64,000 bases of DNA from Takakia lepidozioides (GCA_030704615.1 CM060732.1:19964001-20028000), one strand, 5' to 3'; positions 2,738-35,900 are shown, counted from the stretch's first letter. Notes: generated by a model from the sequence alone, not told the origin. Made by a program: numbers and translations.

Positions 2738-3071
2738 TGTAATATTTTCTTAATTGATTCATGTTTGCTGTTTGCTGTTTTTTTTGGGGCCCTGCCTTTG
2801 GAGGCCACTATTTACTAATTTAGTAGGTAGTAAGTTAGTAGGTAGTAAGAGGGGGGTCCCTTATATAGCCTCTCAGGGCGGTGGGACCCTTCTAGAAGCC
2901 CACCGACCTTCTAGAAGGCCTTGGACACATGTCAACCCTACAAGACTCTCTATTCTAAATTTAGCCAATTCCTCCCTTCTTTTTTTGGACCCCCTCATCT
3001 CATTCCTCAATACACGTGGCCTTCCTTACATAGGCGCCCCACTCTAATTCCTGGGCCACAATAATTCCTGA
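2738..3071. mobile_element. Left part of a solo-LTR-like repeat (~380 bp in total) split by the large hAT insertion
   Basis: 2806-3071 is the reverse complement of 13866-14140 with scattered mismatches and one ~10-bp indel. Joined to 18656-18710 it restores the continuous sequence of the inner copy. Termini are TGTAATAT (2738) and ATATTTACA (18710); a TATA-like TTATATAG lies at ~2851. The left boundary is tentative. Confidence 0.6.
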
Positions 3072-3311
3072 CCTAGTTGCAAATTTGGACGTGACGTGGC
3101 GTTGACGCGTCAGCATCACGTCCGACGTCAGCGACGGACGTGCATCACGTCACGTCCTAAACCGACGTTACTGTACATAAATATGTTTATTTTTTTACTT
3201 TATTATTGACTATTTACTATGAGAACCGACGTGGCAACCGATGTGGCCTCATTACGTGGACTTCATTAATTATCTGTAAAATTCATATATTAATTATTTA
3301 TATTGTCAATC

Positions 3312-3795
3312 ATGCGACCGTCAGCAAAAGTTGGTCGGACAATTTTATTTTATTTTTTTAAAATTGCGACAACCAGAAGGGGGTGGTCGCACATTTTTTT
3401 ATTTTTTAAATGGGTGCGACCACCAGCAGGTGGTGGTCGCATTTTCATTTTTTTTAATAGGTGCGACCACAAGCAGAGGGTGATCGCACATTTGTTTAAA
3501 AAAAAAATTGGGTGCGACCACCAGCAGGTGGTGGTCGCAACTTTTTCATTTTTTTTAAATAGGTGCGACCACCAGCAGGGGATGGTCGCACATTTTTAAT
3601 TATTTTTTAAATGGGTGCGACCACCAGCCGGTGGTGGTGGTCGCAGACTTTCTTTTTTGGGTTGATTAAGGTGCGACCACCAGAGGGGGAGGTCGCAGAC
3701 GTTTTTTTTGTTTTGTTATTAGTGCGGGGGTCCATAGGTACGACCGCTCCCTGGACACGTGACGAGGCGTGAATGGCCAGCAGAGGCGGTCGCAC
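3312..3795. repeat. Array 1 of ~8-9 palindromic 27-bp units (TGCGACCACC-agcaggg-GGTGGTCGCA) with T/A-rich spacers, ~50-bp period
   Basis: Units at ~3312, 3365, 3415, 3462, 3513, 3564, 3616, 3672 and a half unit at ~3777-3794. Confidence 0.9.
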
Positions 3796-3814
3796 GCCAG
3801 GCCTCTCCAGGCAG

Positions 3815-3823
3815 TATATAAGG
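3815..3823 (+). promoter_or_regulatory. Putative TATA box of the kinase cargo gene
   Basis: TATATAAGG ~20 bp after array 1, followed by a probable 5'UTR intron (GT 3862 to AG 4105) and the ATG at 4118. Confidence 0.55.
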
Positions 3824-4117
3824 GCCTACCCCTCATTCCCAACCCATTTTTTTCCCTTTCTGTGAGTGCGGTTCTGGGGCTTTTTGGAGTTTGAACTTCG
3901 GTGGCCAGGACTGAGCGTGGAAGGGGGGGGGGGAAGAAAGTGGATTTGTGTGGGGGAGGAGTTTTTTCCTTTTTTTCTTGGGACTGCGGGAGAGTTTGCT
4001 TTGGGTACTATACCAATAGAGGGTGAGGAAATTGGTCTGCTAGTATAAAAAATTATCAATAGTCTGGGTTTAGTTTTCCGTTACGAAGCCACGTCTATTC
4101 CGCAGAGTACTTTCATC

Positions 4118-5626
4118 ATGTCCGGAAACGTTGCTTCGAACGCAATGTCAGGGGGTTCCTCAGGAAGTGGGCGTAAAGGTAGGAAGCATAAACATGCACA
4201 TGAACGGGATAGTCAGGTCAACAAAAAAGACTATCCAAGCGCAAAGGCCGCGAAGGTGGTAAAGCAAGTAGTGCTAGATTATTTGAAGGACAATGACATA
4301 ATGCGTTTGAATCTTTTGTATGTCCGACATGGGAATGAGGGGTTCCTTAGATTCCAGCACAATATGGAGATGAGAATGAGGGAGGCTTTGGCCGGGGATG
4401 AATGGGAGGAGGACGGGGCGAAATTCCAGTTCACGAAATGGATGGAGGACCGGGCCCATGATGCCACATGGAATCTGAGGCAAACCATGGACAAGTTTGT
4501 TACGAGAACACCTATAGTTGAAGGTCGCATGCCAACTTCGGAGGAGGAGTTGTTTGTGCTCGTGGATTGGTGGTCTGACATGGCAAAGGCCCACGCCAAA
4601 CGACGTACGAAACCACTCCCATGGAAGGCAGGGTCCTCGTCCGCGGATGCGGCATTGAACGTGACATACATATCCACAAACGCACAGATACAACAACTCG
4701 ACGCGCCCAAACAGGGAGGGTATGGTACAATTCGGAGGGTTAGAATTGTTGGGGATCAATTCATTCCTCTATCTTGGGAGCTAGCAGGGAAAACGCCCAG
4801 GGAAACAAATGCTGAGCTTGCCAAAGTCCAACATAACAATGAGGCGTTGGTTGTAAAGTTCCATCATTTCGGCATCATAAAGTATTTTGCGTTGCATCCA
4901 CGTCGAAATGAAGGTTACACACATTGGTGGAATGGGGGGACCATACGATCATGGTTGAGTATTAACAGGAAATTGATGAATGATCGGGATAACATGGAGT
5001 TAATGGAACGACGGGGGACGGAGCAGGAAATGCAGGAGGTCAACCGACTGGTTCGATTCCGATAGAATCGCGCCCAATTGGCATAGGCGCTTTTGCACAT
5101 CATGCTCAACGTCCATAATCACCACCTCTTGCACAACGACATGTCCCCCGACAACATCTTGTTGCATTTTCCACAAGGGTCTGAAGATGTGTACATTGGG
5201 GTATGCGATTGGGGGATGGCCTCCACGACGGATGACCCAAAAACCACGTTGTACATTTTCGAGAGCAGAGACAAGAAGATAAAGACTCTCGCACATAGAT
5301 GGTGGATTGCACCTGAAATTGCAATTGTTCATAATGTAGCCAACAACCAGTCAGTCGGCATACCTCGTAGACCCCCTCTAACCGTGCCATCAGAGACCTT
5401 TGAAATTGAGAAGATAGCCCAGGCAATAAATGGGGGTAACACGTTCGATGCAAGCCTGTTTAACGATATGTCTACTGGAACCTGTTTTGCTTCGGCTCTG
5501 GAAAACTTGAGTGTAGACACAGTAGAGTTGCGATACAAACTAGAAAATGTTGTGAAGAGTTTCATGACGGGGCTATTCAAATGGCCTGAGCCCAAAAATT
5601 ACTGGAGGATGGATAGAAACTTGTAG
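4118..5626 (+). pseudogene. Intronless Ser/Thr-type protein kinase (~502 codons) with two in-frame TAG stops; transposon cargo
   Basis: ORFs 4118-5065 and 5093-5626 are in the same frame, separated by TAG at 5063 and 5084. Motifs: GGYGTIRRV (Gly loop), LAGK (beta3 Lys), HNDMSPDNILL (catalytic loop), CDWG (DFG equivalent), WWIAPE. The basic N-terminal stretch RKGRKHKH resembles an NLS. Confidence 0.85.
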
Positions 5627-7069
5627 ACCCCTAACTGTACATCATGTTTGAATAAATGTTGTTTTCAATTGTGTTTGTCTCGTACCATAATGTTTTAATG
5701 GTTGTTATTTGGCTATGGCACCTGGGTCCATCATATGGGATAATCAAGCACCACACCCACGAATTTTGAAGAGTGAAAGTGTACATCATGTCAATGGGTG
5801 AACCAATCGTTCCCCTGCCAAATGATTTTAGATTGATTTGAAACTTTGGGAGTGTCTTGTACATGCCCTCTTTAAGTTACCGGACAAGTATGAGGTCAAT
5901 CTAAAATGGTTCTAAGGGTGAACCAATAGTTCCTCTATTAAATGATTCAAGATTGAAAATTGGTTGAAAGGTTTAACGAGTCGTTCGGGGGGCAAATGAT
6001 TATTTCTTCGCTTGCAACTTTATGTACGTGATTTGTACGTACTTAAGCACATATGGACCAAAGTTGAACTTCAACAAAGTTGTTTGAATGGGTTATTCAA
6101 ATTCATAAGGATAAACAACCTTTCGTCTGCACATGAATTGTTTTTAATTCCATTCTGAAGCCATATGCTTGATAACAACATGAAGAGTTGCATGCAAAAT
6201 ATCACCATGAATAGACATCGCCTGCATTCAAAACACATTTTATTCCCTCATTTGCACTCCAAGGTGAAGTTATCTTCAACTTCATGCACTCTTCATAGAG
6301 AGTTCTGCAATAGTGAGCATAGAGCAAAGGATGAACGTTTTTTTTCAAATATTTTTCTTTGGTGCATTTTTTGGCAAGGATGTGGTGGTGTGAGGGTTCA
6401 ACTCACATAACAAAATCAAGCCAAAAACAAAATCATTGCACCCCACACTCATTGCGCCCTACAATCCTATGCCATCTAAATCATTTTATTTAGTAAAAAT
6501 CCAGTTCAATTCAAAATTGGATGAAAGGGTGAACGGAAACTTCCCCGATGCAATGATATTTTATTGCTCCGAAACTTTGCAAGTGTCTTCTACATGCCCT
6601 CTTACACGTCTTTGAGAAGTATGACATCAATCTAAAATGGTTTAAAGGGTGAATCAATCATCCCCCTACCAAATGATTTTTAATTGATTTGAAACTTTGC
6701 AAGTGTCTTGTACATGCCCTCTTACAGGTCTTTCACAAGTTTCAAGTCAATCTAAAATGGTTGAAAGGGTGAATCAATCATGAACATATCAAATGATTTT
6801 TGAGTGCTTTAAAGCTTTGCAAGTGTCTTTCACATGCCATTTTAAAGGTACCAGACAAGTATGAGGTCAGTAAAATATGGTTGAAAGGGTGAACCAATTG
6901 TTCCCCTATCAAATGATTTTACATTGCTTTGAAGCTTTGCAAGTGTCAGCCACATGCCCTCCTACAAGTACCGGACAAGTATGACGTGAATAAAAAATGG
7001 TTGAAAGGGTGAACCAATCATTCCGCTATCAAATGATTTTATATTGCTTTGGATGTCATTGCTTTGGTA

Positions 7070-7445
7070 ATTCTAGCCCCCCAATTGCCCATTGTAACCC
7101 TTGAATTACAATTCAAAATGCAATTCAAGCCCTTAAAATTGGTAATGCCAGTCCCTAAAATGACCAACCCCGGCCGCCCCTCAAATTGTAATTTGAGCCC
7201 TTGAAATTGTCAATTCCAACCACTCAAATTGCAATTGAAGCCCCTGAAATTTAATTCCAACCCTCAAATTACACTTCTAGCCCCTGAAATGACAATTCCC
7301 GCCCCTCAAATTGCAACTGTAGCATGTGAAATGGCAATTGCTAGTGCAGCCCCTGGAATGGCAATTTCAGCCCCTCAAATTGCAAGTCCAGCCCCTGAAA
7401 TTGGCAAATCGAGCCCCAGAAATGGCAATTTCAGCCTCTGAAATT
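7070..7445. repeat. ~21-bp minisatellite (GCCCCTGAAATTGCAATTCCA-like)
   Basis: Degenerate tandem units such as gcccctgaaatgacaattccc and gcccctcaaattgcaactgta. Confidence 0.8.
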
Positions 7446-7619
7446 GGCTATGGATGAACCAATCATCCCCCTGCCAAATGATTTTGGATTGATTTGAAAC
7501 TTTGCGAGTGTCTTGTACATGCCCTCTTAAAGTTACTGGACAAGTATGATGTCAATGTTAAATGGTTCAAAGGGTGAACCAACAGTTCCCCTGTTGGATG
7601 ATTCAGGATTAATCGTTAA

Positions 7620-9866
7620 CGATTGATCTCATATTACATTGGGACCTATCAGAGGGTACATTGAACACACTGGCCAAGTTTCAAAACGAAGGAAAATCAT
7701 TTGGATGGGCAACCATCCGTTGGCCCATTGAACAAATTTCGGTTGATCTCATATTACTCTGTGGCCTCTTCCATGGTACATTCAACATACTGGTCAAGTC
7801 TCAAAGCGAACCAAAATCATTTCGATGGCCAACCATTCGTTGAGCCATCGAACGAATTTCGATTGATCTGATATTAGTCCAACACATGTGAGAGGATGTC
7901 TCGAACGTACTGGCAAAGTTTGGAAGCAAACAAAAATGATTTGGATGGACAACCATCCGTTCACCCATTGAATGTATTCTGTTGGATTTGCTATTATTTT
8001 GCGACCTGTTGGACTGCGTTTCGCGTGCTCATGTTTTTTGTTTCATTCCGTTTTTAAATGGGGCGTGTAATGACTCCATATGCAACGTGCGTGCCAAATT
8101 TTGGGAGCGATCAAAATTCATTTGGACCCAAAACCACAGTTTCTTGCCCGTTTTGCACTCCAAACTTGATTTGTGCTATACTTCATGCACTCTTCATAGA
8201 GAGTTCTACAATAGTGAGCGAAGAGAACATTTTATTTTTGGGGCATTTTTGATTGGTCCAAATTTTGGCGGGGGAGTAGCAGTGGGATGCTTGAAGCCGC
8301 AAAACAAAATTGAGCCAAAAACAAAATCGATACGTTCCAAAAACCCCCAATGAAAGGCAGTGCAAACCTATTTATTGGCTTAAAATTAATTTAAATTCAA
8401 TTACATTATGGAATGGCTTGATGTCGATGGGGAGGCAAATGATTTATTCGGCTGTTGTGTCTCCACACATGTTCAAGCATATGCGGGCTAAAGAGGGGCT
8501 TCAACCACATCCGTTCAATGAGTGCAATAGCTGTGCACGCATTGCAGGATTTCTTTTTTGCAATGAACAAAAACCAGATGACAACTGAACGCCTCATTGG
8601 CCCATCGAACGAATTTCGATTGATCTCATATTACACTAGGACCTATCAGAGGGTACATTGAACACACTGGCCAAGTTTCAAAACGAAGGAAAATCATTTG
8701 GATGGGCAACCATCCGTTGGCCCATTGAACAAATTTCGGTTGATCTCATATTACTCTCGGGCCTCTTCCATGGTACATTCAACATACTGGCCAAGTCTCA
8801 AAGCGAACCAAAATCATTTCGATGGCCAACCATTCGTTGAGCCATGGAACGAATTTCGATTGATCTGATATTAGTCCAACACTTGTGAGAGGGTGTCTCG
8901 AACGTACTGGCAAAGTTTGGAAGCAAACAAAAATGATTTGGATGGATAACCATCCGTTCACCCATTGAATGTATTCTGTTGGATTTGCTATTATTTTGCG
9001 ACCTGTTGGACTGCGTTTCGCGTGCTCATGTTTTTTGTTTCATTCCGTTTTTAAATGGGGCGTGTAATGACTCCATATGCAACATGCGTGCCAAATTTGG
9101 GAGCGATCAAAATTCATTTGGACCCAAAACCACAGTTTCTTGCCCGTTTTGCACTCCAAACTTGATTTGTGCTATACTTCATGCACTCTTCATAGAGAGT
9201 TCTACAATAGTGAGCGAAGAGAACATTTTATTTTTGGGGCATTTTTGATTGGTCCAAATTTTGGCGGGGGAGTAGCAGTGGGATGCTTGAAGCCGCAAAA
9301 CAAAATTGAGCCAAAAAAAAAATCAATACGTGCCAAAAACCCCCAATGAAAGGCAGTGCAAACCTATTTATTGGCTTAAAATTAATTTAAATTCAATTAC
9401 ATTATGGAATGGCTTGGTGTCGATGGGGAGGCAAATGATTTATTCGTCTGTTGTGTCTCCGCACATGTGTCGCACGCATATTCAAGCACATGCGGGTACA
9501 AGAAGGGCTTCAACCACATCCGTTCAATGGGTGCAATAGCCGTGCACGCATTGCAGGATTTCTTTTTCGCAATGAACAAAAACCAGATGACAGCTGAATG
9601 CCTCATTGGCCCATTGAACGAATTTTGATTGATCTCATATTACACTGGGACCTATCAGAGGGTACATTGAACACACTGGCCAAGTTTCAAAGCGAACAAA
9701 AATCATTTGGATGGGCAACCATCCGTTGGCCCTTTGAACGAATTTCGATTGATCTCATATTACTTTGAGGCCTCTTCCATGGTACATTGAATATACTGGC
9801 CAAGTCTCAAAGCGAACCAAAATCATTTGGAGGCAAATGATTTATTCGTTTGTTCATTTTTTTCGT
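7620..9866. repeat. Recent ~1-kb tandem duplication (2 full copies plus a partial third)
   Basis: Near-identical ORFs at 7661 and 8658 (offset 997); a third copy has the same point at 9667 and is truncated at ~9830. The block is flanked by the 13-bp direct repeat GATTAATCGTTAA (7607-7619, 9867-9879). Confidence 0.9.
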
Positions 9867-10353
9867 GATTAATCGTTAATGGTGAAAAGGATAAACCAAA
9901 GGTTCCTTGATCCAAAAAAATTTGAATGATTTGAAATTTTGCCAGTATGTTCGACATGCCTCTTACATGGACCGGACAAGTATGAGATCAATAAAAAATG
10001 GTTCACAGGGGGAACCAATGGTTACTTGATGTGCCAATTTCTGAATGCTTTCAAACTTTGCCATTGCATTGTACATGCCCTCTTAAAGGTACCGGACGAG
10101 TATGAGTTCGATTTAAAATATTGCAATGGGTGAACCAATGGTATCTTCATTCAATAATTTTTGATTGTTTTGAAACTTTGCCAGTATATTGTACATGCCG
10201 TCAAACAGGTACCGAACAAGTATGAGGTCATTCAAAAATGGTTCAAAGGATGAACCTCGTATTTCCAAAAATTACGTAGACTATACAGTGGGTTGCACAT
10301 TTAAGTTTTCGCAACCTGAGACCTTTGGCCTACTCCCTACGTTTCTAGCCTTT

Positions 10354-12581
10354 CTAGTCATCTTCATCTAGATTTATTACTTTGTTGTCGTCATCTCCAG
10401 ATGTTGATGAAGATGCTCCAAAGAAATTGTCCAACACCTCCTCCTGTTGGGGGTCTCTGCGCAACTCTGGAGGAAATGGCCCTTCATCCCGACGAAGCAC
10501 CCAATATCTCTCATTCATATCATCCCAACGGATGCTAGCGGCCTCCAACTCCATCAGAAATAGGTCTCTCCCAATCGGTTCGCGATTGTATGGGTCGTTT
10601 TCCGCTGGCACCCACGGATCCTCAGGCAGTCGGAAGAATCTTTGTCTGGTATAGCTCCAATGCCCTCCCAAGTTCCGGCAAAAAAACTCCCTTTGGACTG
10701 GGTCCCGTATGCCTCTAGCACGTACGGTTATTTCCCAGTTGGATGTCATCCAAAAGGTCACCAGATGTTTAACCCTAGTTAACGTCTTCGCATCCAAGGC
10801 GTGCATCTCTTTTGGAGCATCCCATGTCATTGTCTCCCCCCAGTGCTGCCAATTTAAAAAATCGTAAGACGATACATCCAATGGCATGTTGTACCGGTTG
10901 TACTCGTATCCCGTGGGCATATTGTCTTGCAACCCAAACAACTCGTAGAAACGTCGATGGATTGGTCCACGACAGTTAGGGTATTTGGCTGGCTCGCATG
11001 GCTGCCGATATGAGACATGCGGGGTCAAACAAATGGCCACATGAACCAAGCATATAGCCTCCCTCCGGTCCGTAAGGGTTTAGGCACATTGTGCACACCG
11101 TACCATCTGTTACCCATGACGCTGGATTGCTCCATGGTATCCACGTCCGTTTATCCTCATGAATGTTGGATGACATCCTCGGCCTGCTGTCCCACTCCTC
11201 CTCTACTTCCAAATCCCAGTTTATGCTCTTATTGGTATCGGAAATTGTATGCACACAGTGCTCAAACATGGCATCCACATAACCCCATGGGGTGAATCCA
11301 GTGTACTTCGACGTTAATACATCACGCACAATGTCGTGCCTTTGCAAATTAGTAGAGATGCTATCTACGCTTCGATTCGACAAATGTGTTGCACGTTGGA
11401 GGGAGGACAACGCTTCTTCTATCCGTGTTTCCCGCGATGCTAGATGGCCCGCCCATGTCACCCAATTCCGCCAATTCTCCTTCAACCATGGCCACGATCG
11501 GATTTGCATGGCATTTGAGTATCGATATGCAATAGCCCTAGCTTGCTCGCGTTCCCCCACAAGCTGCTTTAATTCCTGTTCTTGGGCCGATGTAATTTGC
11601 ACGGCTGAACATTCCCTAGTTTCCACTATGGGGTCCTTCCCTTTTCTTGCCCTCTCCGCCGCAAGTCTTTCTTCCTCAACCCTCGCCGGATCCAGTTCAG
11701 GCGTTTGCACTTCATTCCCATGCTCGATTGAGTCAACCCCATCGATGACGCGGTCAATGTCCATTGATGGCATATTCAAACGCGCCAATATGTTTTGCTC
11801 GTTGGTGATTGGCCTCGGGTCCTGAAGCACACCGCGTACGCTGTCGAGAGTCCCCAACCCCATTTTTTCCAGTAACTTCGCTATTTGCCACCGTTGCAAA
11901 TGAACAATGTCTTGCAGGTCCTTGATGTGCTGTTCATGTGCGGCCAACTGTTCCTCCAACGGAGAGCGTACCTCGCCCCCCTCCACCTCAGACGTTGAAG
12001 GCCCGGCTGCGGAGACCTGTTGCGGCGTATAATCTGGAGCCTCCTTCTTCCACCTCGTCGTTTCCATCCAACCGTATGATGTCCTGCCCCTGACGTATAT
12101 ACAAGTCTGGGATATCAGAGAACATGTATAGTCTAGTACGATGTCTCGCAGTGGCAGTTTGCCAATCCACTGGTCGCAATAAAATCAACTCTGTGTACAA
12201 CATGGCCGCAAATAAATATGGGACCTTGTTGTTGACGAGCGGTTGACCCCACAATGTTGTATGTACCTTATCTACCCTGTGGCGGAAATGCGAGTTGGCG
12301 CAGGAATGCAAGCTAGCTTGATTTTGTTTGGTTTGTGGATCATGCCTATCTCTGGGCCACAAACGATTTATGTGACACTAGTCCACAAATTTCCTGCAGT
12401 CACCAAGCGACCACCGCTGCCCCAACCTCCAAACTTCCTAACCTGGTTCCGCAAGAATGTTGGGGTCATTGTATATGTCCCAACAAAGTTCGCGCCTGGC
12501 CCTTTTTGGTTTTTTTTTGGGAGGTCCAGGTTCATTATCATCATCCCTTGGATGACCTCCTCTGTCTTCCTCCTCCGCCAT
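10354..12581 (-). pseudogene. Intronless NLS / coiled-coil / RING-H2 finger protein (~740 codons; putative E3 ligase); transposon cargo
   Basis: ATG at 12581 gives MAEEEDRGG...PPKKKPKRARR (NLS). TAG stops at 12440 and 12380; frameshifts near ~12060 and ~10985 join ORFs 11988-12362, 10976-12067 and 10354-11049. Coiled coil LEEQLAAHEQHIKDLQ. RING pattern CTMC-x14-CGHLFDPAC-x10-YPNC, with two ligands degenerate. Confidence 0.7.
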
Positions 12582-12942
12582 TTATGGCCCTGGCTTACCC
12601 CTACTTGACAGGTGTTTGCTAAGAAAAATGCTCTCCCAACCCTCCTAAATCGTACCTAATCCTACTCTCTAACGAATCCTCCCCAAGTACTAGAGACACG
12701 TGTCACTCCCTTCGCGGTTCTAAGTGATATGACGCAATGTGCAATGAAAAAAATGTGGGTGCCAGAGGAGGGCTTCCCGGGAGGTACCCAGCATCGATTT
12801 CGTAGAAACCAACGGCCCAAAATACCCCCCACCCAACCAATAGCACCCCTCTCCACTTGGACTCAATGACAAGGAATGCAACATCCCATCGCCCACCAAG
12901 TCCTGGTGTGGAGAAAAGTGAGGGAGAGAATGGCCTCCAAGG

Positions 12943-12950
12943 CCTTATAA
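12943..12950 (-). promoter_or_regulatory. Putative TATA box of the RING cargo gene
   Basis: TTATAAGG on the minus strand, ~60 bp from the proximal unit of array 2. Confidence 0.45.
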
Positions 12951-13429
12951 GCCCCCCCTCCACACTCAGGGTGCGTGCTGTCATCATGACTGCGCACGCT
13001 AGTAATAGCTGCGACCGCCAACAGGGGGTGGTCGCATCATTTTTTTTTTCTTTATTAGGTGCGACCACCAGCAGGGGTGGTCACAAAAAAATTATTTATT
13101 TAATAGGTGCGACCACCAGCAGGGGGGTGGTCGCAGATTTTTTTATTTTTTTAATGGGTGCGACCACCAACAGGAGGGTGGTCGCAGATTTTTAAAAAAA
13201 AAATAGGTGCGACCACCAGCAGGGAGGTGGTCTTTAATTTTTCTTTTTTTTAATAGGCGCGACTACCAGTAGGGGGGTGGTCGCAGAAATTTTATTTAAA
13301 ACAAATAGGTGCGACCACCACCTGCTGGTGGTCGCACTATTTTCCTTTTTTTAAAATAGATGCGACCACCAGCAGGGGGGTGGTCGTAGGGGGGTGGTCG
13401 CATAATTTTCCGATTTTTTAATATCTACC

Positions 13430-13670
13430 AACAGTCAGTAGCTCAGTTGGTTAAGTGCACTGAGTGCGACCTGGACGATTCTGGGGTCAAATCTTGCTAC
13501 TTGATGGGTGTGGTATGGTTTGTGTGTGGTGCCCCATTCCTACGCCTCATGGCGCATAAATGAAAGAGGTTATTTTCACTTCTCACTACTAAGGGGCCTG
13601 ATTTGTGAGCTGTCGCTCCCAGGTGTTTCCCAAAACAAAACAAAAAAATAAATAAATTTTAAAAAAAAAA
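13430..13670 (+). mobile_element. tRNA-derived SINE
   Basis: Pol III A-box TAGCTCAGTTGG (~13439), B-box-like GGGTCAAATC (~13484), a unique body and an A-rich tail (13632-13670). It sits in an AT-rich spacer of array 2; no clear TSD. Confidence 0.65.
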
Positions 13671-13816
13671 TCCGCGACCACCAGCAGGGGGGTGGTCGCA
13701 CCATTTTTTTTAGGGGCGACCACCAACAAGGGGGTGGTCGCAGAATTTTCTATTTTTAAATAGCTGCGACCACCAATAGGGGGGTGGTCGGACCATTTTT
13801 CTTTTTGTTAAATAGG

Positions 13817-14140
13817 TGCAAATAATATGTAGAGCAGTTTCATTCGGGCCCTGATTCTACAGTGGTCCAGGAATTACTGTAGCCCAGGAATTAGAGTGGG
13901 GCGCCTATGTAGGAAGGCCACGTGTATTAAGGAATGAGATGAGGGGGTCCAAAAAAAGAATGGAGGAATTGGCTAAATTTAGAATAGGGAGTCCTGTAGG
14001 GTTGACATGTGTCCCAGGGCCTTCTAGAAGGCTCCCAGGGTCGGCGGGCTTCTAGAACGGTCCCACCGCCCTGAGAGGCTATATAAGGGAACCCCCCCCT
14101 TACTACGTACTAACTTACTACCTATTAAATCAGTAAATAG
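13817..14140. mobile_element. Second copy of the solo-LTR-like repeat (inverted, truncated at one end, uninterrupted)
   Basis: Reverse complement of 2806-3071 plus 18656-18710. It starts with TG and is flanked by the direct repeat TAAATAGGTG (13809-13818, 14134-14143) inside a palindrome unit. Confidence 0.75.
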
Positions 14141-14923
14141 GTGTGACTACCAGCAGGGGGGTGGTCGCAACATTTTTCTTTTATTTTAACAGTTGCGACG
14201 ACCGCTACTGGTGGTTGCACAATTATTATTTTTAAAATAGGTGCGACCACCAGGAGGTTGGTCCCCTTGCACCTGTATGTATATTTGGAGAGGCAAATAA
14301 AAAGCACATGTATCGACTCCCCATGGATTTGTGAAGGGGAAGATGAATGTTGGGAGCTGCACCTGGCCTTTGTGGCTTTCGAAACCATAATAGGAAATCA
14401 ACAATGTAAAGATAATGACGAAACACAAACACACGCACAACCACCAAACCCTTTCTTGGGTACACATATTCCACCATTTTTATTTCCGTACACGTATGCA
14501 TGTACCCAAACTGAAACATGGATATCCATGGAAACATACTACACATAATGTGACAGAAGTTATAGCTGTACTTAGTTCCGTCTGGCACGACGACGATGGT
14601 ATGATCTCACGCCTAGTACAAAATCTTCGTCCCCACTCACTTCACCCCCGTTCCCATGATCAGTGCTAGAATCATGATCTCCATCTGTTCTTTCGTTTCT
14701 AGAGGCAACTGGCCGTTGGACCTGTAGTCGTCCTCGGAGTACGTTCACTTGTATCTCTAGTCAATTTCCACTCCTATCATGAATACCATCTAGGGTATCA
14801 GGCCTGTTCACAGATCGCTCACCAACAAAAAGTTGCACAATTCTCTACCGTTTCTAGGCTTGTCCCGGATTTCGTGGTGGCCTTGGAGCAGGTCTCGCAC
14901 GAGGAAGGCTACTCGCACGTACA

Positions 14924-17504
14924 TCAGAGGGGCCGACATGAGAGGAAGGGGCCGAGGGAGCACGGTTCACATGCGGACGTTGTCGGGCCAGATGAAACGA
15001 CAATAGCCGGTTTGACTTGCAGAAGTCCCGCAGTAGAAGAAGCATCTCCCAGGATCGGAGTAGCGATGGAAGGAATTACATGAGGGGGAGAGAGACTAGA
15101 TGGACCAGCATGGGATGGACCGGCTTGAGAAAGAGAAACATGAGATGGAGCGGCGTGAGATGAAGCACGGTTCACAGGGACACGATGTCGGTGAAAGAAT
15201 GACAACGGTCGGTTGTCATCATCCGACGATTCGACCTGCACATCTCCCGCAGTCCATGGAACTCGTGGTGGGGGAGAGTTGACATCAACTTCATTGTTAA
15301 GAGTGTGCTCCACTGGGGAAAAAGGGTCCACAATTGGGATGACACCATATCGCAGTTCATCATCAACAAGGTCATCGAATGATGGATGCATTGCAACATC
15401 ATTGTCATTAAATTCATATGGGTCATGTGGAGGATTGTCCACATCATCGGACCCATCCCAACCGTTGGAGTCGGAGTCCCTTGCGGTGTCGGTGTCATCA
15501 TTGCTGCTAGATTGGACATCTGAGGCAGATTCTTCAGACAACAGATTCTTCTCGTACCATGCAGATGTGTCACTTGCTGTCCTCTCTCGCCGTAGGCTAC
15601 AATTCGTGTAGACATAAACCAATTTGTCAGCCCTGGCAGGATTCAACCTGTTGCGAATCTTGTTGTGAACAAACAAGTAACTGCTCCAGTTCCGCTCACA
15701 GGACGACGCTGAGCACACTTGAGCAAGAATATGCTTTGCAATGGGAGCTAACGTTCTTGCTCCAGCTCCAATCAGATCCCACCATTCATGTGGCAACACG
15801 TTCATTGCTTTTGGATCCGACATGTCATGGAAAGGATTCTGGCGATCCGAGAAGCACTGGTACTCGGACAAAGCTCGCTCTACCATGTTCAAGGGCGCGA
15901 GTTGCATGATGACCCGTACAAGCCCGACTTTGGCATCCACATCGTCTCTCAAATCTGTATTGTCCTGCAAGAATGGATTTAGCAAGGCCCCTGCATAATG
16001 CAAGTCCGTGCGAACCATCCGTTTGCGGTCGTAAAATGCATCATCGGTCCTTGCCGCCAAATCATCGTCCATAGAAAATGGAGGACGCCTCAAGGATTGC
16101 ATGTGCTTCTCAAGGTTTTCCAATATCAACCATGCTTTATCCATTATTGGTTGTTTTCCATCAAACTCCCGCAAAGCAATCAACACCGGCTCCACCATGT
16201 ACACAAAATTTGCACATTTCGCCCAGAAATCGTCGGAGCGAATGATTGCGCGGACCCTCCGACTTTTGCTCAAAGACTTGGACTTACGAGAGTCGCGTAA
16301 GGTGCCCACATACGCATCCCATTGAGGGTCAATGATCAGCTGCTCCAGACCCGCCCTCACAGTCACCAGTCGATCCACCATCAAAAAGTTTGTGGCAAAG
16401 CGGGTTTTACCCGGGTTCCTAAGGCTGTATTTGGGTTCATGCTTTCTAAACAATGCCAGAGGGATGTGATGTATACGAATGAACGTCACAACCGACTTTG
16501 TCCTTTTTACTAGTTGTTTCATCCATGATTCTTTTCCTCAATCCTCCAAAAGGAGATCAAAGATATGAGCAGCACACCTTTGATAATATAGATGGGGATA
16601 TCGTACCATCAAAATATCGGCCATATTAACCATGTTAGATGCATTGTCCGTGTACACTTGGACAAATTTTATTAGCTCCAATTTTATCGATGAAACTCGT
16701 CAACAATCCTGCTTGATAACGTGCATCTTTTCTCTCCCCGCTTGTGTCAACGGATCCCAAAAATTGTTCCCCCGCAGGACAGACCAGCATGATATTGAAC
16801 AGTGGTCGATTACTAACAGAACTCTAACCGTCCGCACATATAGTGCTTCCATATTTCCGGAGAGAATCACCTGTCTTTTCATTCACCTTTTGGGTGAGGT
16901 CAGAGATAGCCTCTTCTAGCAATCTTGTGCGGAGATCGCGATAACTCGGAGGTGTGTATGTGGACTTGGAATCGGACGTGGCTTTGACAGCAGCCACAAA
17001 CGCAAGAAGCCTCGAGACATTGAACGGAATATTGGCCTCGTAGAAAAATTGGGTCCACTTCTTATCTAGAGTCCTCCTGTGCGACAAATTTAAGCCTTCT
17101 TGCATTGATTGTTGCCTCAATGGTCTGGTCCGTACAAGTGCTGGCGTACAATCGGGTGTTGCTCCTGACCCACCGGCTTCTCCACGAACAGCAGACGCCT
17201 CGCAAGAATCCCCCTGGGTACAACTCTGAGGGACATTTTGATTCGAACCTGGAGTGTTTGGCTCAGAAGCCGCGGCCACATCAAGAGACAGTGGGATATT
17301 GCCTCTACATTGGGCAAAGTGGGCTTTCACTCGCATGAAGGCTTTTGGGCACAAACTAGCCCCTGCATTCTTTCCATCTCTGTAGCCGAGGTGATATAAC
17401 ATGCGATCTTTGCGACCCGCCAGCTTCAATGCACAAAGATTGCATTGAACACCGTCTTTTTTGTGCGGGTCTACGGTGAACCAAGGGATCCACTCCTCCC
17501 TCAT
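14924..17504 (-). pseudogene. hAT-family transposase (BED zinc finger, DUF659, hAT dimerisation domain) with two in-frame stops
   Basis: BED-like CNLC...HL; FFYEANIPFN; PSY..LRTRLL; ADG* (TAG 16824-16826 where DGW is expected); VQVYTDNASN; CAAH; LLED* (TGA 16538-16540); TRFAT; WWDLIG; SASSCERNWS; RNRL; LVYVYTN. All lie in one frame. Confidence 0.95.
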
Positions 17505-17813
17505 CCTCACACCCAAAACCCTAACCACAAAGGTTGAACGAAGAACACTAGTGTACTTGGTAGATTTGTCAAGAGCAATAGAAGTTAGAACAGAATGCGA
17601 TGGCCCAACACTACGGCATCAATCCATCCAAGTAGATCAATGCACCATGTAATATTGTGTTTTTCGACAATTTGCTGTAGTGGCTCTGGTGGAAGCCACA
17701 ACAACAAACAGTCCGCACCCTCCTCTTGGGCTTACACTCTTGCTCAAGGAATAGAGAACATTCACTCGCCACAAAAGTGTTTGCCACAAAAGAAGTGAGG
17801 GGTATTGGGACCA

Positions 17814-17822
17814 CCTTATATA
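17814..17822 (-). promoter_or_regulatory. Putative TATA box of the transposase gene
   Basis: TATATAAGG on the minus strand, ~50 bp from the proximal unit of array 3. Confidence 0.55.
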
Positions 17823-17869
17823 CCCTCCAGCCTCCAAGCCTCACACGCTCGACGAATCAGAATCCAATG

Positions 17870-18433
17870 TTGCGACTGCTCCAGGTCGCACGAGGAAGTC
17901 ACATGTTATTTTTTAAAAAAAAACTGCTGCGATCACCCTCATGCTGGTGGTCGCAGATATTAAAAAACAGAAAATTGTTGCGACCACCCCCCTGCTGGTG
18001 GTCGCACCTATTAAAAAAAAGAAAAATGTTGCGACCACCCCCATGCTCGTGGTCACAGAGATTATTAAATAAATAAAATAAATAAAAAATAAAAAATTGC
18101 TGCGACCACTCCCCTGCTGGTGGTCGCACCTATTAAAAAAACTGAAAAATGCTGCGACTACCCCCATGGTGGTGATCGCAGATATTAAAAAATAAAAAAC
18201 TGTTGCGACCACCCCCCTGATGGTGGTTGCACCTATTACAAATAAAATAAAAATTGTGCGACCACCAGTAGCGGTGGTCGCAACTGTTTAAGAAAAGAAA
18301 AAAATGCGACCACCCCTGCTGGTGGTCGCATCTATTTTTAAAAAACAAAAATGCTGCAACAACCCCTCTGCTGGTGGTCGCAACTATTAAAAAATAAGAT
18401 AAATTCTGCCACCACCACCATTTGGAGGTCGCA
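17870..18433. repeat. Array 3 of ~11 palindromic units, inverted relative to array 1
   Basis: TGCGACCACC-ccctgct-GGTGGTCGCA units at ~17871, 17927, 17979, 18030, 18101, 18152, 18204, 18257, 18305, 18355 and 18407. Confidence 0.9.
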
Positions 18434-18655
18434 CCAATTTAACAATAATGATTTTACAAATATTGGCGGATGGAGTAATTTATAAAACAATTCATTCACT
18501 TGCCAAGATGTCGCCTGGAATACAACGTGTCCACCTACGTGGCATATTTTTCACCTAACTCATGTTTTACTGATTTTTCGGCAAAACTGACGTGACGTTG
18601 GTTGCGTCAGCGTCAAGTCCGACGTGACGTGACGTCACTGACGTGCGCAACCCTG

Positions 18656-18710
18656 ATTCCTGGACCACTCTAGAATCAGGGCCTGAATGAAACTGCTCTA
18701 CATATTTACA
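18656..18710. mobile_element. Right part of the split solo-LTR-like repeat
   Basis: ATTCCTGGACCACTCTAGAATCAGGGCCTGAATGAAACTGCTCTACATATT matches the reverse complement of 13824-13873 and ends in ...TTTACA. Confidence 0.75.
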
Positions 18711-21436: not shown

Positions 21437-23049
21437 TGGCATTGGAGTGGAGAGTTGCTTTTAGGCTGGTTGCTGTATGTGAGATGGGATGTACGTTGTT
21501 TATGAAGAGGGAGGGGGGTTGTGTTTGGTGGAAGCGGCGGGCTAGTCATCTTCTCCTATGTGTCATGGTCTTGTTCTCGTTTTGCTGTGTCTGGTCGTGA
21601 GTGAGCAGTGGCAAAGTGGGGGGCAGGCCGAGTGTTGGGGTCGTGATGTTCTCCTTTGTGTCATGCTCTCTTCATCGTTTGCTGGTCTGGTTCGTGAGTG
21701 AGCATGGGCAGGGTGGGGGGGGGGCCAGGCCAAGTGTTGGGTTTTGTTGTTTTTTTGGGTGTTGTTGTTTTTTGGGGAGGGTGGATCGTGCTGTCAAGGG
21801 TGGGGTCTTGTTTGTGGGGGTTCTCTGGCTGCTTGGGGGGGGGGGGGGACTGTCTGCACACTGGGCAGATCAGGGGGTTCAAGCCCCCCTCAGTTCTTAG
21901 TCGTGGCTGGTTTCTTTGGCTAGCAGTTGGCCTTGTAAGGTTACCTTAAATTACCTCAGATGAGATCTGGCTCATTTTTATTATGAATTGCGGCACTCAG
22001 TGGCTGAAGTGCGCACCTTAGCGGCTGAAGTGATCACCTCAGCGGCTGATCAAGTGGTGCACTTCAGCGGTATAATTTGGAAATTTTTATTTTATTTTAT
22101 TTTGTGCTTAATGGCAGGTGGACATGGTCGTTGCTTCCCCGGGACCCATTCACTCGCAGCAGATGGGCCCGGAAGCCAAGTCGGGTAGCCAATTGGGCGC
22201 GCACCCATTTTGCTGATGTGGCCCCCTGTGTGGCCTGCCGGAACTGTTTACCGGACAAGCCTCTGTGGGCATGAGATGGAAGTGACTGGAAAAATCACAA
22301 AAAAACCCATCTATAGAGCAATTTTTGGTTTTTTTCAAAACATTTTGGGCCTCTTCTTGCCCTGTGGGCCCTGCAGGATTGCACTAAAGGAAACTTGATT
22401 TTGTAAAAAACTGGAGGAGCTATGTGGATCTTCCTTTCCCTGTGTAGTTTTTCTTCCATTGAACCCCCCCCTAATATTACTCCAAGGCACTCGTCTCGAG
22501 TTCCAAAATGCTGATGAAGTCCGCTTTTCGAATCACACATGATCGCGCGAGATAGAACAGTTCTCTGCCTCCACCACCATGGAAAACCAGTACAATTTAT
22601 AAAACCCAATTTCAATCAACGACGAGGATGCTGTCAGTTGCTCTGGGAGGGATTTTGGAAGCAGCCAAAATTACTTCAATCCATTTTAAAAGAGGGAGTT
22701 TACAAAGCTTCCACAATCCATCTAGGACCAAGTAAGACGACCATCGTGTGTGATTGAATTGTGTGTTATGGACCATCCAGTCACAGACGAAGATCGTGTG
22801 AGTTGGTCCCCATCGTATTATGCAAACATCGTAAAATTCATTCTCATGAAATATTATGAAGTACTTTTGAAAGCCTCCACAATCCGTTTGGCACCACATG
22901 ACAGCATCTTCGGTGTGGATTGAGTACACAACAAACTCCTCCAGCCTCCAGCCTCATCTGTTTCAGCCTCCACTGATAATGAAGTCATCTTGTTTTGATA
23001 ACATTTGATAACACTGTTGTTCCATGCCAGCTCCACAAGACGAGATATT

Positions 23050-23580
23050 AGGAAACCACGCGCGATCGCTCGTGGCTTATCTCAAACTTCGTTGACCAAC
23101 TTTTAGGCCCACTGGAGCTTGCAGAACATTGACAGTGTTACATAAAGAATGTTATTAATGAAAAAGCCAATGGTTTAATTCATCAATAATACAGAGTTGC
23201 TTCCCAAACGGCTCACACTCAAGGCATATGTGCGAGACCGACGTTGGTTACCATTGATGGCGGAACTCTGCGCACTCGAGGAAATGGATACAGTCGGAGA
23301 TTGATCGAACATATCAGGGAACCACGCGCGATCGCGCGTGGTTCATCTCAAACTTCGTAGACCACCATTGAGGCCATAGGAGCTTGCAGAACATTGACAG
23401 TGTTACATAAAGAATGTGTTTAATGAACAAGCCAATAGTTTAATTCATCAATAATATAGAGTTGCTTCCCAAACGGCTCACACTCAAGGCATATGTGCGA
23501 TATCGCCGTCGGCTACCACTGATGGCGGAACTCTACGCACCTGAGGAAATGGATACAGTCAGAGATTGACTGAATATATG
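23050..23580. repeat. 266-bp tandem duplication starting with the palindrome ACCACGCGCGATCGCGCGTGGT
   Basis: Copies start at ~23055 and 23321 and share long identical stretches such as GGAGCTTGCAGAACATTGACAGTGTTACATAAAGAATG. Confidence 0.9.
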
Positions 23581-24059: not shown

Positions 24060-24661
24060 TTAGTGAGGTCAACCAAATCCTCCTCATTGCTTGATTTCTT
24101 GAATGTGATTGGGAAAACTCCAGTATTCACTGGGTTTCGGTGTGCCTTGGATGGGTCATCATTGACCAGGAGAATTTGCCCCTACCTAGCAAAATCTTTC
24201 CCAAAATTTTTGACGAGAATATTCTTAATATCTTTAATAAGATATTTCATTTCAGGCTTAATATGTCTAGCTGTATCTGTGCAATGCTCGGCAGACCAAA
24301 TGAAGCGAAATTTTTTCATAATTTCTGGGGAAATGAAACACTCCAACATCTTCAATACAATATCCCTCTCAGAGCAAGACCAAATCCCAACATGAAAATG
24401 AGTCAATGCAAGTCTAAGAAACTCCAGCACTCTAAGTCTTGGAACCACAAACGGTCTTGCGGGCACACGAATTGTAACTTTCCTCAAGTGGAACCTCTGT
24501 TTAAACAACTCACTTCCCGTAGGAGGTAGCCGGTAGCAAAGAAGTCCATTGACACTCAGGACCAGCAACATGCGTTTCTGCTTTCGGACATCACATGTGG
24601 GTTGAGAGACAACGTTCTGAACCATCCAAAAGAGCGCATTAGTTTCTGTTATCTGACCCAA
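24060..24661 (-). pseudogene. FCP1/NIF-like HAD phosphatase-domain pseudogene (copy A)
   Basis: LLVLSVNGLL (motif I, Asp replaced by Ser), EFL...FHVGIWS, FIWSAEHC, LIKDI. After TAG at 24182 the same frame continues GQILLVNDDPSKAHRNPVNTGVFP. Confidence 0.7.
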
Positions 24662-29531: not shown

Positions 29532-30211
29532 TTACTTATCATTTACTTGAAAATCACGATATTGTGAATTGTCAATATAGTCAAGAAGAGGCCTGAATTG
29601 TGGATCCTTAACATTGAAGGGTGGAAAGCCTATACTCCTTGCTGCCAAAAAGCTCAAAACGTTCTCAAATTTCAAGAAGCCAAGCAAAAAATTCCTAAGT
29701 TTGCGAAGGAAGAAACCGTCGACGTCGATGTTCTCAAAAGACTTGAGAAGCATACATGATTCACGAGGGTTCAACAAGCACTTCAAAGCCGTATCATCAA
29801 TCGGCAGAGTGTTACTCTGATTGTAATAACCGTCAGAACTCTGCCAAACTTTTATGAGTGGTTTCAGGAACACGAGAGGTTGTTCTTGTCCCGATTGGTA
29901 ATTTGGGTGTAGATTGCTTCGGCAAATGATACAATCTTCCTGCGACATGATGAACTCTGGCCGTGGAAGACCACGTAGGAGCAAATCCAGAACGACATTT
30001 AAGTTCTTAAGCATCATGCAGCTCCAGATACCTAAAATGAAATGCTTGTGTAACTCTTGCCAAACTTCCCGGTACATCTTCCGTATAAAGATTTGCCGAT
30101 TCCCAACAATAGCAGGAATTTTGTAATCAGATCTGAAAATCGTGGAGCAGCGCCTGTGTTCCGGCGCTTCACAATTTTGCACAACACTCCATTCACGTCA
30201 AAAATTATCAA
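29532..30211 (-). pseudogene. FCP1/NIF-like HAD phosphatase-domain pseudogene (copy B)
   Basis: LIIFDVNGVL (30211-30182, motif I), then a frameshift into FILGIWS, SQEDC, VFLKPL..VW and YNQSNTLPIDDT..KC..NP. Confidence 0.7.
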
Positions 30212-31400: not shown

Positions 31401-32914
31401 ATGGATCTACAGGATCAGTAAATAATATCTCATCTGCCCATATTCTAGCGGCCTCCAATCTGGTGGCCTAAAGCAATATGTTCAAGGAGATTCAGAAATC
31501 ATAGAGGGTCTACTTCTGCCTTATTCACTCATTAACCATGCAACAACTTCAGTATATCATCCACCATTGCTTATCACCACAATAATAGCCACAAGAAACC
31601 CTGTAGGGGCATTGCTTCTATGAGGACAGGAATTGATAGCTCACACAGCTCCAGCAATATTAGGATGAGTGCGACAAGCTCCAAACCAAGAAGAGAGCAG
31701 TATACTGCTCAGCGACGAGGTTGGCCTCCAAAAGAGAGGGTCACTGTATAAAACTCCCTCCTTGCAACATCACATGGCGTGCAGCTTTGAAGGAGTTGAG
31801 GACCCAACTACTTTTCGCAAATGCTAATTCTACGAAGTAAATTAAATACGCTTATGTCAAGTTTTATCTAACCTTAAAACAAAAAGCGCAAGACTAACAA
31901 GTCCTCACTGCATACAAGTGCAAGTGAACACCTAGGGGCTTCAATACTGACGCCAACTCCAATTGTTGCAATCCGCATCCAATCTGCCACCGTCGTTGTC
32001 TGCCAAAACAAATGGAAACTTGGCAAAAAAAATCTTGAATACAAGGACAAACTTGGAAAAGCATAAAAACTCTCTTGAAGAAGAGTGGTACATGAACAAG
32101 AAAATGCAGGCTGGTAGCATACATGTTTGTTCACAAATGTTGATGGCACATGTACTAACAAGCATTTTCCAGTGTACTCTCAGAGCACTGGAGTCCTCTA
32201 AACCATCATGCCTGCAGTCTTCACTTTGCAAAAGGAAGGGCCCAAATCAACCACATCCCATCTTTTACCTAACTAGCAAAAGTAAAATGCCTCTCACGTC
32301 TTTTTGTAGAGCTGCCTTAGGTGCTCAATGTGGCTTGCTGGAAAAACCTGGGAAGACACAAAATCGCTGATTTGAGTTATTAGCTGCATGCGGTGGAAAT
32401 TAAGCTTGCCTTCAATGTCCCAGGCTCAGCGGCCTGAGGAGTTTGTCCAGCACCAGAGCTGCTCTGCTGCTTCAGTTAGACAATGCCCCCTGAACCCTTC
32501 CCCACACAATGTCCCAATTTAGCCTGTTGCCTCTTGAATAGCTATGGGTCACAAGAACAAAAGCACATGATATACCCTATGCCGCTCAGACATCAAATGT
32601 GCAAAGACAAGAAGAGCTCAAACTCTACCACCGTAACAGATTACATGTGTCAACCTACAATACAAAGTTCAGGCCCAGAAGGCACTGCCCATGAACTGAA
32701 CCATTAACGAGGATCAGAAATGCAGCTTGGCAGCTTATCTCCACGAGGTGTGACTAACTCTTATACTGGACAAGGCTTTCAATTAACTAGTTGCTCATAA
32801 CCATCCCAAGGTGTTAAGTACAAGTTTTACATTATTCACATCCAGTGCAGAGCTTTCCACAACTTCAAGTGGAAATTTGTTAAGATCAAGCATAAGTGAC
32901 GACACTGACCTAGC

Positions 32915-35900
32915 CTAGCCTCCAACTTGACTGGGCACCGCCCCTCCAGTCGCGTCAATCACCTGGCGTTGCTTGGGTATATGGGGTTCTCGTCGGGGCT
33001 CCATCTCGACATTACGTGCACTAGAGCGGCCACCAAAGTGACCACGGCGTGCATGGCCATGATCCCTGCTCCTCAGTGCAGGTGGACTTGTCCCTGGCTC
33101 TCCGACCCGAGGCCCACTCTCTTTTGGACCCGGTGTAGACAGGGCAGCTGGTCGTTGGAGTGGATGAGTTGTCTTGTTCTGTTGTTGCCCTTGGATTGGC
33201 TTTGGTACTTCATGCGCCTGCTGCTTGGGAATATCGGGCCTCACATGCTGAGGTGGGACTGGCTGTTCCTCTTCTGTAGGTTGTGGCCAGGTTGTAGCAG
33301 AGCGAGAACCCTCTGTTCTGCCTGCTTGCTGCCAGTGTGTCTGTCCTCGCTGATGGGGCTGCTGCTGTGCCATAGAAGGCCTAGTTGTCTGCTCTCGATC
33401 ATATCGTCGGTGACTTTTATGATCTCCACCATCATTTGACTGTTGAGATGCAGACCTAGTTTGCTGCTGCTCTCTCTCATCCAAGGCTGGTTGCACCCAA
33501 GGCTTACTAGCTGTGCCAGGGAGGGACTTGGGTTGCAGATGCGGCCCTGCAAACACCTGCTGATTAGGCACCTCATACTCTCTGTCATAAGTTTGTTGCT
33601 TAGCATGATTAGCACTGCTGGACCTTGGATGATGCTGGGGCCGTGCTTTGTCGGATGAAAGTGGTCTATCCAATGGGGTCCCACCAGAGCGAGGATGAGG
33701 TGGCACCACACCCTGCTCACGGGTGTGGTGCCCCTTGCTCTCTGCACTTGGAGGCCCATGTCCACAATGACCAGAGGCAGGCACTGCCCTGGGTGGCTGG
33801 TAGGGCGTTTGTGATGTGTGCTGCTCCCGCTCTGATCGCTGCACTGGAGAAGGGGCAAGCTGGGATGGTGCGACAGGGTGATCAGAAGGTGACTGGTTGA
33901 GACTGAGAGGAGGCTGTAGACTCCCAGACTTTTGCTCTGAGTGCTGTCGCTGATGGCCAGCTTCAACCTGGGACTGTGGACGAGGATGCTGGGCAGGGTG
34001 GCCATCTTTCACTCCATTTCTTCCTCGCTCACTGTTACCTGATGCTCTTTGACGCCATGAACCATGCACACGCCCCACCTTACTGCCAGGATCCACTGGT
34101 TTTGTTTCATTATTTGATTTCAGCTGTGTTGGGGCAAAAGACGGTTGAGAGTTTCCTGAAACAACACCGAGCGGGGCGTGCATTGAAGTCTCCATGGGTA
34201 GTGGCCTATCAGGTACGACCCCTGGTTGTTGCTGCGATGTCTCCTGATGCTGTTTAATGACTGGCTTTGGAGTATAACGCTCCAATTCTGCCCGTCTCAA
34301 GCGCCCTCGTTGCTGTGCGCTGACATCTTCTTTCTGCTCACCTGTCTGACCCTCAGAATCTCCCAACTTGATGCTTCCTGCAACCATGGGGGAACGAACT
34401 GGAGCCCACACCTTGCTGTCACTGGCATGTGGCTTATCCGTGATGCGCACGTCCTGTGATCCCCGATCTGACCTGACCGGGCGTCTTGCTCCCTGTGGCT
34501 TGCGGGGCAGCCTTTTGCCAACAACATCTCCATTTGTTTTGATCGAATCCCCCTCTCCTGTCAGCACATCTCCTGCTGGCAGACCAGCATTTGCATCTTG
34601 CGAAGGAAATGGGTCTTTGCCTACCTCATTTGGACTTGCACCGACATGTAAACGAGTCTGGGTTGTGTCAGCGGGCAGGTCACTTCCTGATGACCCATCT
34701 GCACTGGGCCCTGCACTTGACTCCACTATCAGTACTGCATCTACACCAATTGCTGGGCCTTCTTGTCTCAGCCTATTCCTGCTATTGCGATTACTTTTCT
34801 TCTTGCGATTTGCTGATGCACCTTCCATGCTCCCTGTGGTGGGAAGAATCATATTTTCCAAATCAGTGTCCTGAGATACAGGAGGCAGAATTCCGCAACC
34901 GCCATTCTCTCCAGGTGTGGAAATTTCTACTGCTGAGGCAGACACAGTTCGATCAACATCATCGGGTCTCAGAGTTGGCTGCTTCTGCTGTGCTCTAGAC
35001 TTATGCCAAGATTGCTGCTGAGCTTTAGGCGGCTGCCCTGGCGGCTCTTGTGTTGAGATAGGTGAGGGCAAGAGAGGTGCTGCCGGCACATTTGGTGAAG
35101 GAAGAAGCGGAGGAGTCTGACTGGGAGCACCATTCATGTTTCCTTTTGTGGCCTCCCCAGTGCTCAGTTTGCGGCCACTAGGCTTCCGATCCCGCTTATG
35201 TTCATTTCGAATGCTGCGCCGACTGCCACTGCTGGAGCCGATCTCTACAACAGGCTCTGCCTCCAGGGGCACAGCCACAGCTTCGGGGGCAACTTCCTCC
35301 AAATCATTCAACGGCTGTGATATCTCTACAGCCAATTCTTCAGTGGGTACTGACTGCGGGATTGTTGTGCGTCGATTCAGCTCCTCCAGCTTTGCTCGAG
35401 CCTTTGCTTTTTGCTCTTTGATTCTCTCCTCCTCCTCCTTTTGCAATTGCCTTGCTCGCTGTGCCGCCATCTCCTTCATTCTTGCCCGCTGAAAAATACC
35501 TTTTTGTGTTAGAAAATGCAAGCACGCATAAAGCCGTCTCCTTCCCCACGAGGAATACAAGTACAATCACAAGCCTTCTCATCCAACAAGATATGGTCAT
35601 CATGATGACAGCAAGTTGAGTATGTCCAAATATGAAGGGTAGTACCACTTACCAGTAGGTATGCCAAGTACAAATAGTTGCAACAGAAATACAGCTGAGG
35701 TGAATACGTTAATCAGACGGCTCCAGACTAAGTACCTGAGCTTCATAATCATAGGAATTGGGTGGAGGGGCAATCTCTGGTTCAGATTCAGCTGTCTCTG
35801 AAGGACCTGAGACTGCTGGAGCAGCTGGTACGGGTACAGCAGTTGATTTAAGCACTTGTGCTGTTGCAGAAGATGAGGAGGGTCGAGAACTTGTGTCCAT

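Follow-up and report, generated by a model that had tools for sequence, protein, structure and literature searches.

Elements of the hAT superfamily are textbook one-gene transposons, in which the transposase binds subterminal repeats, excises the element and inserts it with an 8-bp stagger. Terminal inverted repeats (TIRs) in the superfamily measure 8–23 bp and target-site duplications (TSDs) 8 bp (PMC2528002). Larger gene sets are known from some DNA transposons. The three open reading frames (ORFs) of the TBE elements of Oxytricha all evolve under purifying selection, and one of them encodes a zinc-finger/kinase protein of 57 kD with unknown function (PMC4724952); the fungal TET+ transposons include hAT7 elements with TET/JBP and IS3EU elements with an alpha-kinase (PMC12730594). 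In VANDAL elements, VANC proteins bind family-specific motif arrays in non-coding regions (PMC5735166). Here we describe a 15.6-kb element at positions 3072–18655 of a 64,000-nucleotide stretch of the Takakia lepidozioides genome (GCA_030704615.1 CM060732.1:19964001-20028000; hereafter the window). As a first-pass annotation of this DNA had proposed, the element unites genes for a transposase, a protein kinase and a RING protein. The same annotation took typical plant hATs to encode a transposase only; there are precedents for multi-gene hATs and for DNA transposons with a kinase (PMC12730594, PMC4724952). We read the element as a decayed copy of a multi-gene land-plant hAT lineage whose cargo would form a self-activation or anti-silencing module, an explanation that, taken whole, we regard as evenly balanced between right and wrong.

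The element interrupts a repeat of ∼310 bp. The left portion of this host repeat (2808–3063, plus strand) resumes at 18656–18706, and the two parts, when joined, align without gaps and with ∼91% identity to the reverse complement of an intact copy at 13820–14140 (minus strand). The boundaries originally placed at 3072 and 18655 are upheld by this empty-site join. ATTCCTG is present exactly on both flanks (3064–3070 and 18656–18662); the next base is A in the left copy but G in the right one. The left TSD copy, ATTCCTGA (3064–3071, plus strand), thus matches the right copy, ATTCCTGG (18656–18663, plus strand), at seven of eight positions. The 8-bp duplication described initially is therefore exact for seven bases and fails at the eighth; the register of the terminus favours eight, leaving the case one base short of proof. 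We estimate the chance of an overlap of at least seven bases at a junction set by the host repeat at ∼5e-4. Together, these data show that 3072–18655 entered the repeat in a single insertion, accompanied by a duplication of the 8-bp type. The ∼310-bp repeat itself has a TATA box and resembles a solo long terminal repeat or a miniature inverted-repeat transposable element. It served as the insertion target of the element and is also found inside it, the intact copy being a secondary insertion into the central array described below, with a 10-base direct repeat, CACCTATTTA, on both sides.

At the right end, the terminus CAGGGTTGC is read on the minus strand from 18655 and is accompanied by a GACGT-rich subterminal stretch (18550–18655, minus strand). 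The left end, on the 3′ side of the transposase gene, is a decayed CAGGGTTG-type end with a GACGT-rich stretch of its own (3072–3180, plus strand). It reads CCTAGTTGC and agrees with the right-end motif at only six of nine positions, so that the terminal motif announced earlier holds for the right end but not for the left, and the window copy has no clean inverted repeat. The left end shares 15 of 21 bases with the 3′ end of one relative (L005), and a matrix built from the 3′ ends of four relatives ranked position 3072 first of 127,958 in the window, with a slim margin. Though decayed, the left end at 3072 is, on this comparison, a family terminus. GACGT occurs 10 and 7 times per 500 bp at the two ends and 0–3 times elsewhere; subterminal repeats are thus present at both, in agreement with the GACGT-rich ends noted before. 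CAGGGTTG-type ends are conserved beside the transposase in six related loci (L002, L005, L006, L010, L011 and L014), and (C/T)AGGGTTG-like ends were found in seven loci, giving short TIRs that start with (C/T)A at the level of the family. The search for a partner end with a matching duplication was negative at L002, L005, L010 and L011, and a blind scan of related loci for a TIR with a TSD returned chance pairs only.

The transposase gene (14924–17504, minus strand) encodes a BED-like zinc finger, DDE motifs, CxxH and RFAT motifs and a hAT dimerisation domain (E 7.5e-7). All three catalytic acidic motifs are present (CxDG[W], TDN and CERNWS), and relatives of the protein (n = 58) mostly have DUF659 and/or Dimer_Tnp_hAT. 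The predicted product is clearly a hAT enzyme, and the element is classed as a hAT by its transposase, ends and subterminal repeats. It resembles DUF659-type plant hATs in the DUF659 and Dimer_Tnp_hAT domains, the BED-like finger, the DDE and CxxH motifs, the short (C/T)AGGG-type ends, a probable 8-bp duplication and the subterminal repeats, but differs from them in its length of ∼15 kb and in its one or two additional dedicated genes, each with a separate motif-array promoter. DUF659-type elements are Tag1-like, and it is through DUF659 that the window lineage was compared with them.

The kinase gene (4118–5626, plus strand; ∼502 codons) encodes a helical N-domain followed by a kinase fold, and its relatives include P0002, L008 and L009. 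The Pkinase domain matches with E 5.7e-7; the Pfam score falls below the gathering threshold. In the alignment we found a GGYGT glycine loop, the beta3 lysine in AGK, the alphaC glutamate, an HNDLSPDN catalytic loop (HNDxSPDN) and DWG. Identity to the intact 496-residue P0002 is 33% over its length, with the catalytic motifs kept; the Atlas neighbours are kinases, the nearest Atlas cluster being from Streptophyta. The RING-H2 gene (10354–12581, minus strand; ∼740 codons) belongs to a family of proteins of 730–1150 amino acids in which an unnamed N-domain is followed by a coiled coil, a RING-H2 domain and a conserved C-domain. Its relatives were recovered by a HMMER library search, whereas a word-based search with the RING piece gave none. 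The RING match is weak in the window sequence, where one zinc ligand has changed from His to Asp. In the intact relatives the C3H2C3 zinc ligands are invariant or nearly so, and a structure model matches RING domains. The N-domain had no match in Pfam, PDB or Atlas; fold searches with the 732-residue RING model, in which this domain was not isolated, returned RING and coiled-coil matches only.

None of the three genes in the window is intact. The kinase gene has in-frame TAG codons at 5063 and 5084. The RING gene has stops at 12438–12440 and 12378–12380 and frameshifts near 12,000–12,050 and near 11,000, the latter within the RING. The transposase gene has stops at 16824–16826 and 16538–16540 and a frameshift at ∼16664. 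Therefore, of the full-length intronless frames first described, the length and the colinearity with intact relatives stand, the latter being consistent with intronless genes, but the frames are broken in all three and the window copy is evidently dead. A kinase copy from a public run (L001), 97% identical, has CAG at the position of the first window stop and a separate stop of its own, so that the breaks are copy-specific. At 25 of the 39 differences between these two copies the window has A/T and L001 has G/C, as methyl-cytosine decay would give.

To examine the linkage of the cargo, DNA around transposase relatives was taken by the length of DNA available alone and not by gene content. The same RING family lies within 10 kb of the transposase in seven of seven independent loci from other samples (L002, L005, L006, L007, L010, L011 and L012), two of which also have the kinase family within that distance; a RING gene is likewise present at L009, a locus anchored on the kinase. 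The RING gene is therefore the constant partner, the kinase is optional and the gene order is not fixed. The RING-linked transposases and that of the window form one clade (Shimodaira–Hasegawa-like approximate likelihood ratio test, SH-aLRT, 100) that leaves out the hATs of angiosperms and Chara. In trees where broken genes were read through with X at stops, (L002, L005) and (L007, L011b) each pair up for both transposase and RING, and the group uniting the two pairs likewise recurs. Pairwise identities of the two proteins are correlated across seven elements (Spearman rho 0.89 in a Mantel test, permutation p 0.003), which bears out the proposed co-divergence. The ratio of non-synonymous to synonymous substitution (dN/dS) is 0.21 (0.15–0.32) between the intact kinases L008 and L009 and 0.44 (0.30–0.64) between the RING genes of L007 and L011b, and intact near-identical kinase and RING proteins occur in several assemblies. 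The comparisons show a predicted RING-H2 family, dedicated to these elements, that travels and diverges with the transposase, with a dedicated kinase family in some sublineages.

The kinase has a RING neighbour (window, L006, L009 and L011) at every sufficiently long locus except L014, whereas RING also occurs alone. Such a pairing might be expected if the cargo acted on the host cell, either as a selfish poison–antidote or spore-bias pair, with a harmful kinase and a neutralising E3, or through a benefit in the stress response. The atypical HNDxSPDN loop, which may resemble that of fungal FunK1-type kinases, would point the same way. Nevertheless, most of the elements have RING and no kinase, so that RING must do something independently of it, and a drive system is a poor fit to an element of high copy number, many of whose copies are dead. 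We consider a host-cell role quite improbable.

A second three-gene unit was found by merging L006 and L013 (ENA ERZ25073694, one contig), giving a 14.7-kb segment with transposase, kinase and RING genes between 17-bp inverted ends (14/17 identical). The transposase cluster of this unit has 96 members. The expectation that the same three genes would recur elsewhere between such ends is thus borne out for gene content but not for gene order, which is unlike that of the window. On another contig, L014 begins at that same end, next to unrelated flanking DNA, and shares 93% identity with the unit across the transposase and kinase; it is, as far as these alignments go, a second insertion of the L006+L013 family. 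The two insertion sites of this related family and the empty-site join of the window are indirect signs of transposition.

Alternatively, the 15.6 kb might have been pieced together from nested or neighbouring elements, or from passively captured host genes, rather than evolving as a unit. Nesting is known in the family, the kinase of L011 being cut by the end of another element; gene order varies between elements; and the window copy has a decayed left end and contains a copy of its own target repeat. However, no internal CAGGGTTG/GACG-rich end was found within 3072–18655. A single motif family precedes all three genes, the relatives of the kinase and RING include no named host gene, and the cargo co-diverges with the transposase. 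We therefore regard a composite origin as highly improbable. Pack-type capture of host gene fragments was also rejected, given the full-length cargo and the lack of a named host relative in non-exhaustive searches. The original view that the accessory genes are dedicated and not a one-off capture is sustained by the RING linkage, the congruent trees, the L006+L013 and L014 loci and the intact cargo relatives under selection.

In L011 (6946–7854), the start of a transposase+RING element interrupts the kinase gene of another element, one with RING and kinase, and nested RING genes also occur in L005; a tendency to insert into kin is possible. Genes for DUF7869 (PF25273) stand beside the elements of one assembly (L006 6548–8284, L012 18426–19783, L013 3014–4696 and L014 21323–22037) and probably represent another abundant transposon.

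Upstream of the kinase gene (3312–3830, plus strand) there is an array of ∼51-bp units, each with a 27-bp GCGACC/GGTCGC palindrome, followed by a TATATAAG box. A GCGACC array and TATATAAG box also lie upstream of the transposase gene (17815–18450, minus strand), and a central array (12940–14263), split by two insertions, is found upstream of the TATA box of the RING gene (∼12945). Ahead of each gene the density of GCGACC is 25 per kb, against 1 per kb in the rest of the element, as the shared promoter design suggested at the outset would predict. In the L006+L013 unit it is GTCCGA that is enriched ahead of each gene (28 per kb against 0.3 per kb elsewhere), and GTCCGA arrays precede the genes of L005 and L009 likewise. 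Each gene is thus shown to have a predicted TATA promoter to itself, preceded by an array of a short, family-specific motif. This layout is conserved while the motif differs by family, being the GCGACC palindrome in the window and GTCCGA repeats in the relatives.

We suggest that the cargo works for the element itself, as a module for self-activation or anti-silencing comparable to VANDAL/VANC, an analogy that we find plausible but hold at slightly less than an even balance. Two observations favour it: VANC proteins bind family-specific tandem non-coding motifs in VANDAL (PMC5735166), and the RING protein, which diverges in step with the transposase, includes a conserved N-domain that might recognise the motif. 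An element-encoded protein, either the RING N-domain or the BED finger of the transposase, would bind the motif arrays; at these sites the RING E3 would then ubiquitylate either chromatin or a silencing factor of the host; the kinase would tune one of these proteins; and all three promoters would switch on together. The window element differs from VANDAL in having a hAT and not a non-TIR Mutator transposase, and its cargo enzymes are a RING protein and a kinase, with no Pfam match to DUF1985 (VANC-type) or Ulp1. Membership of VANDAL was rejected on the transposase, leaving at most a VANDAL-like way of working.

Several points weigh against this reading. The flanks of the L006+L013 unit differ, with no matching TSD, and the similarity of L014 ends before the RING gene, with no RING within the DNA retrieved. 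The co-divergence test covers only seven elements. The purifying selection anticipated for the cargo is seen in the intact relatives, but dS is near saturation for the L008/L009 kinases, and between close dead copies dN/dS is 0.60 and 0.76, with wide intervals and not different from 1. The lack of Pfam or PDB matches to the RING N-domain makes its binding to the arrays a guess. The kinase structure model is unusable (predicted local distance difference test, pLDDT, 37), the arrays could be plain transposase sites, and the function of the cargo is inferred from sequence.

The kinase and RING proteins might instead regulate transposition, the kinase phosphorylating the transposase and the E3 removing or disassembling it, so that copy number is limited or jumps are timed; the arrays would then be autoregulatory transposase sites. 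A kinase and an E3 make up a standard phospho-degron pair, and RING–transposase co-divergence fits direct contact. Transposases alone activate cognate copies, according to a 2026 preprint (10.64898/2026.08.24.746577). However, the kinase is missing within 10 kb at five of the seven loci, most hATs need no such partners, and an array before an internal gene is explained less well by regulation of transposition than by a role in chromatin. We judge this alternative unlikely.

In its most specific form, the anti-silencing model posits an old non-flowering land-plant hAT lineage with its own E3 (and a kinase in some branches), in which a new DNA-binding domain reads the arrays and ubiquitylation counters silencing; this we advance tentatively, as doubtful though possible. 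Were it true, it would be a second, enzyme-based plant anti-silencing system, independent of VANC. Retention of RING-H2 down to ∼40% transposase identity, together with the added kinase and the array rebuilt before each gene, would imply a selected function. The lineage would offer a testable route into the resistance of DNA transposons to silencing in early-diverging plants, and would explain unnamed kinase and RING proteins of plant and soil assemblies that are otherwise counted as host genes. The window copy, being dead, matters only as a well-bounded example: it would make none of the three proteins and could move only in trans, which is unlikely given the damaged left end.

Among the other multi-gene elements, TBE was likened by description only; it differs in its Tc1/mariner transposase, ciliate host, smaller size and the union of kinase and finger in one ORF. 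The TET+ transposons set three precedents: a hAT with an accessory enzyme, hATs with 7-bp TSDs and a DNA transposon that carries a kinase gene (PMC12730594). There, the TET/JBP cargo moves between superfamilies and the kinase is the alpha-kinase of IS3EU, whereas here RING tracks the transposase vertically. ToxhAT (14 kb) is of similar size and carries cargo, but does not count as an earlier giant hAT, having been moved to the TA-duplicating elements of Tc1/mariner type (PMC12506042). The literature searched, whose coverage excluded Repbase Reports and most subscription papers, yielded no hAT that carries RING or kinase genes. Kinase-bearing DNA transposons are thus known in ciliates and fungi, and what we found nowhere described is a RING (and kinase) set in a hAT lineage.

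Two further features lie within the element. The spacer between the converging kinase and RING genes (5790–10260) contains a 120-bp satellite in +/−/+ blocks capable of folding back, a 21-bp array (7176–7446) and a ∼1-kb tandem duplication (7620–8822 and 8617–9831, 95%), with a predicted folding z-score of −4.7 at 7440–7960. The window, L006 and L009 all have a fold-back repeat block separating the kinase and RING genes, which may be a terminator or a source of small RNAs. In the central array, the insert at 13425–13660 (plus strand) is probably a tRNA-derived short interspersed element, judging by A-box- and B-box-like motifs and an A-rich tail; Rfam gave no match, only sub-threshold hairpin matches.

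Elsewhere in the window, two tandem paralogues on the minus strand (32880–38986 and 46324–52419), 77% identical over 6.2 kb, have long low-complexity exons and no Pfam match; their motif KEEEERIKEQKAKA..KLEELNRR may resemble that of plant MOS1/BAT2-like proteins. An exon of a GMC oxidoreductase (56408–57547, minus strand; PF05199 E 5e-26, PF00732 E 5e-10) probably belongs to a host gene. Two fragments of NIF/FCP1-like phosphatase genes (PF03031) in repeat-rich DNA (24182–24661 and 29532–30182, minus strand) may be cargo of another element. ORFs spanning the 500-base N gap at 53681–54180 are artefacts. Finally, a 265-bp tandem repeat is present in two copies, 89% identical, at 23045–23579.

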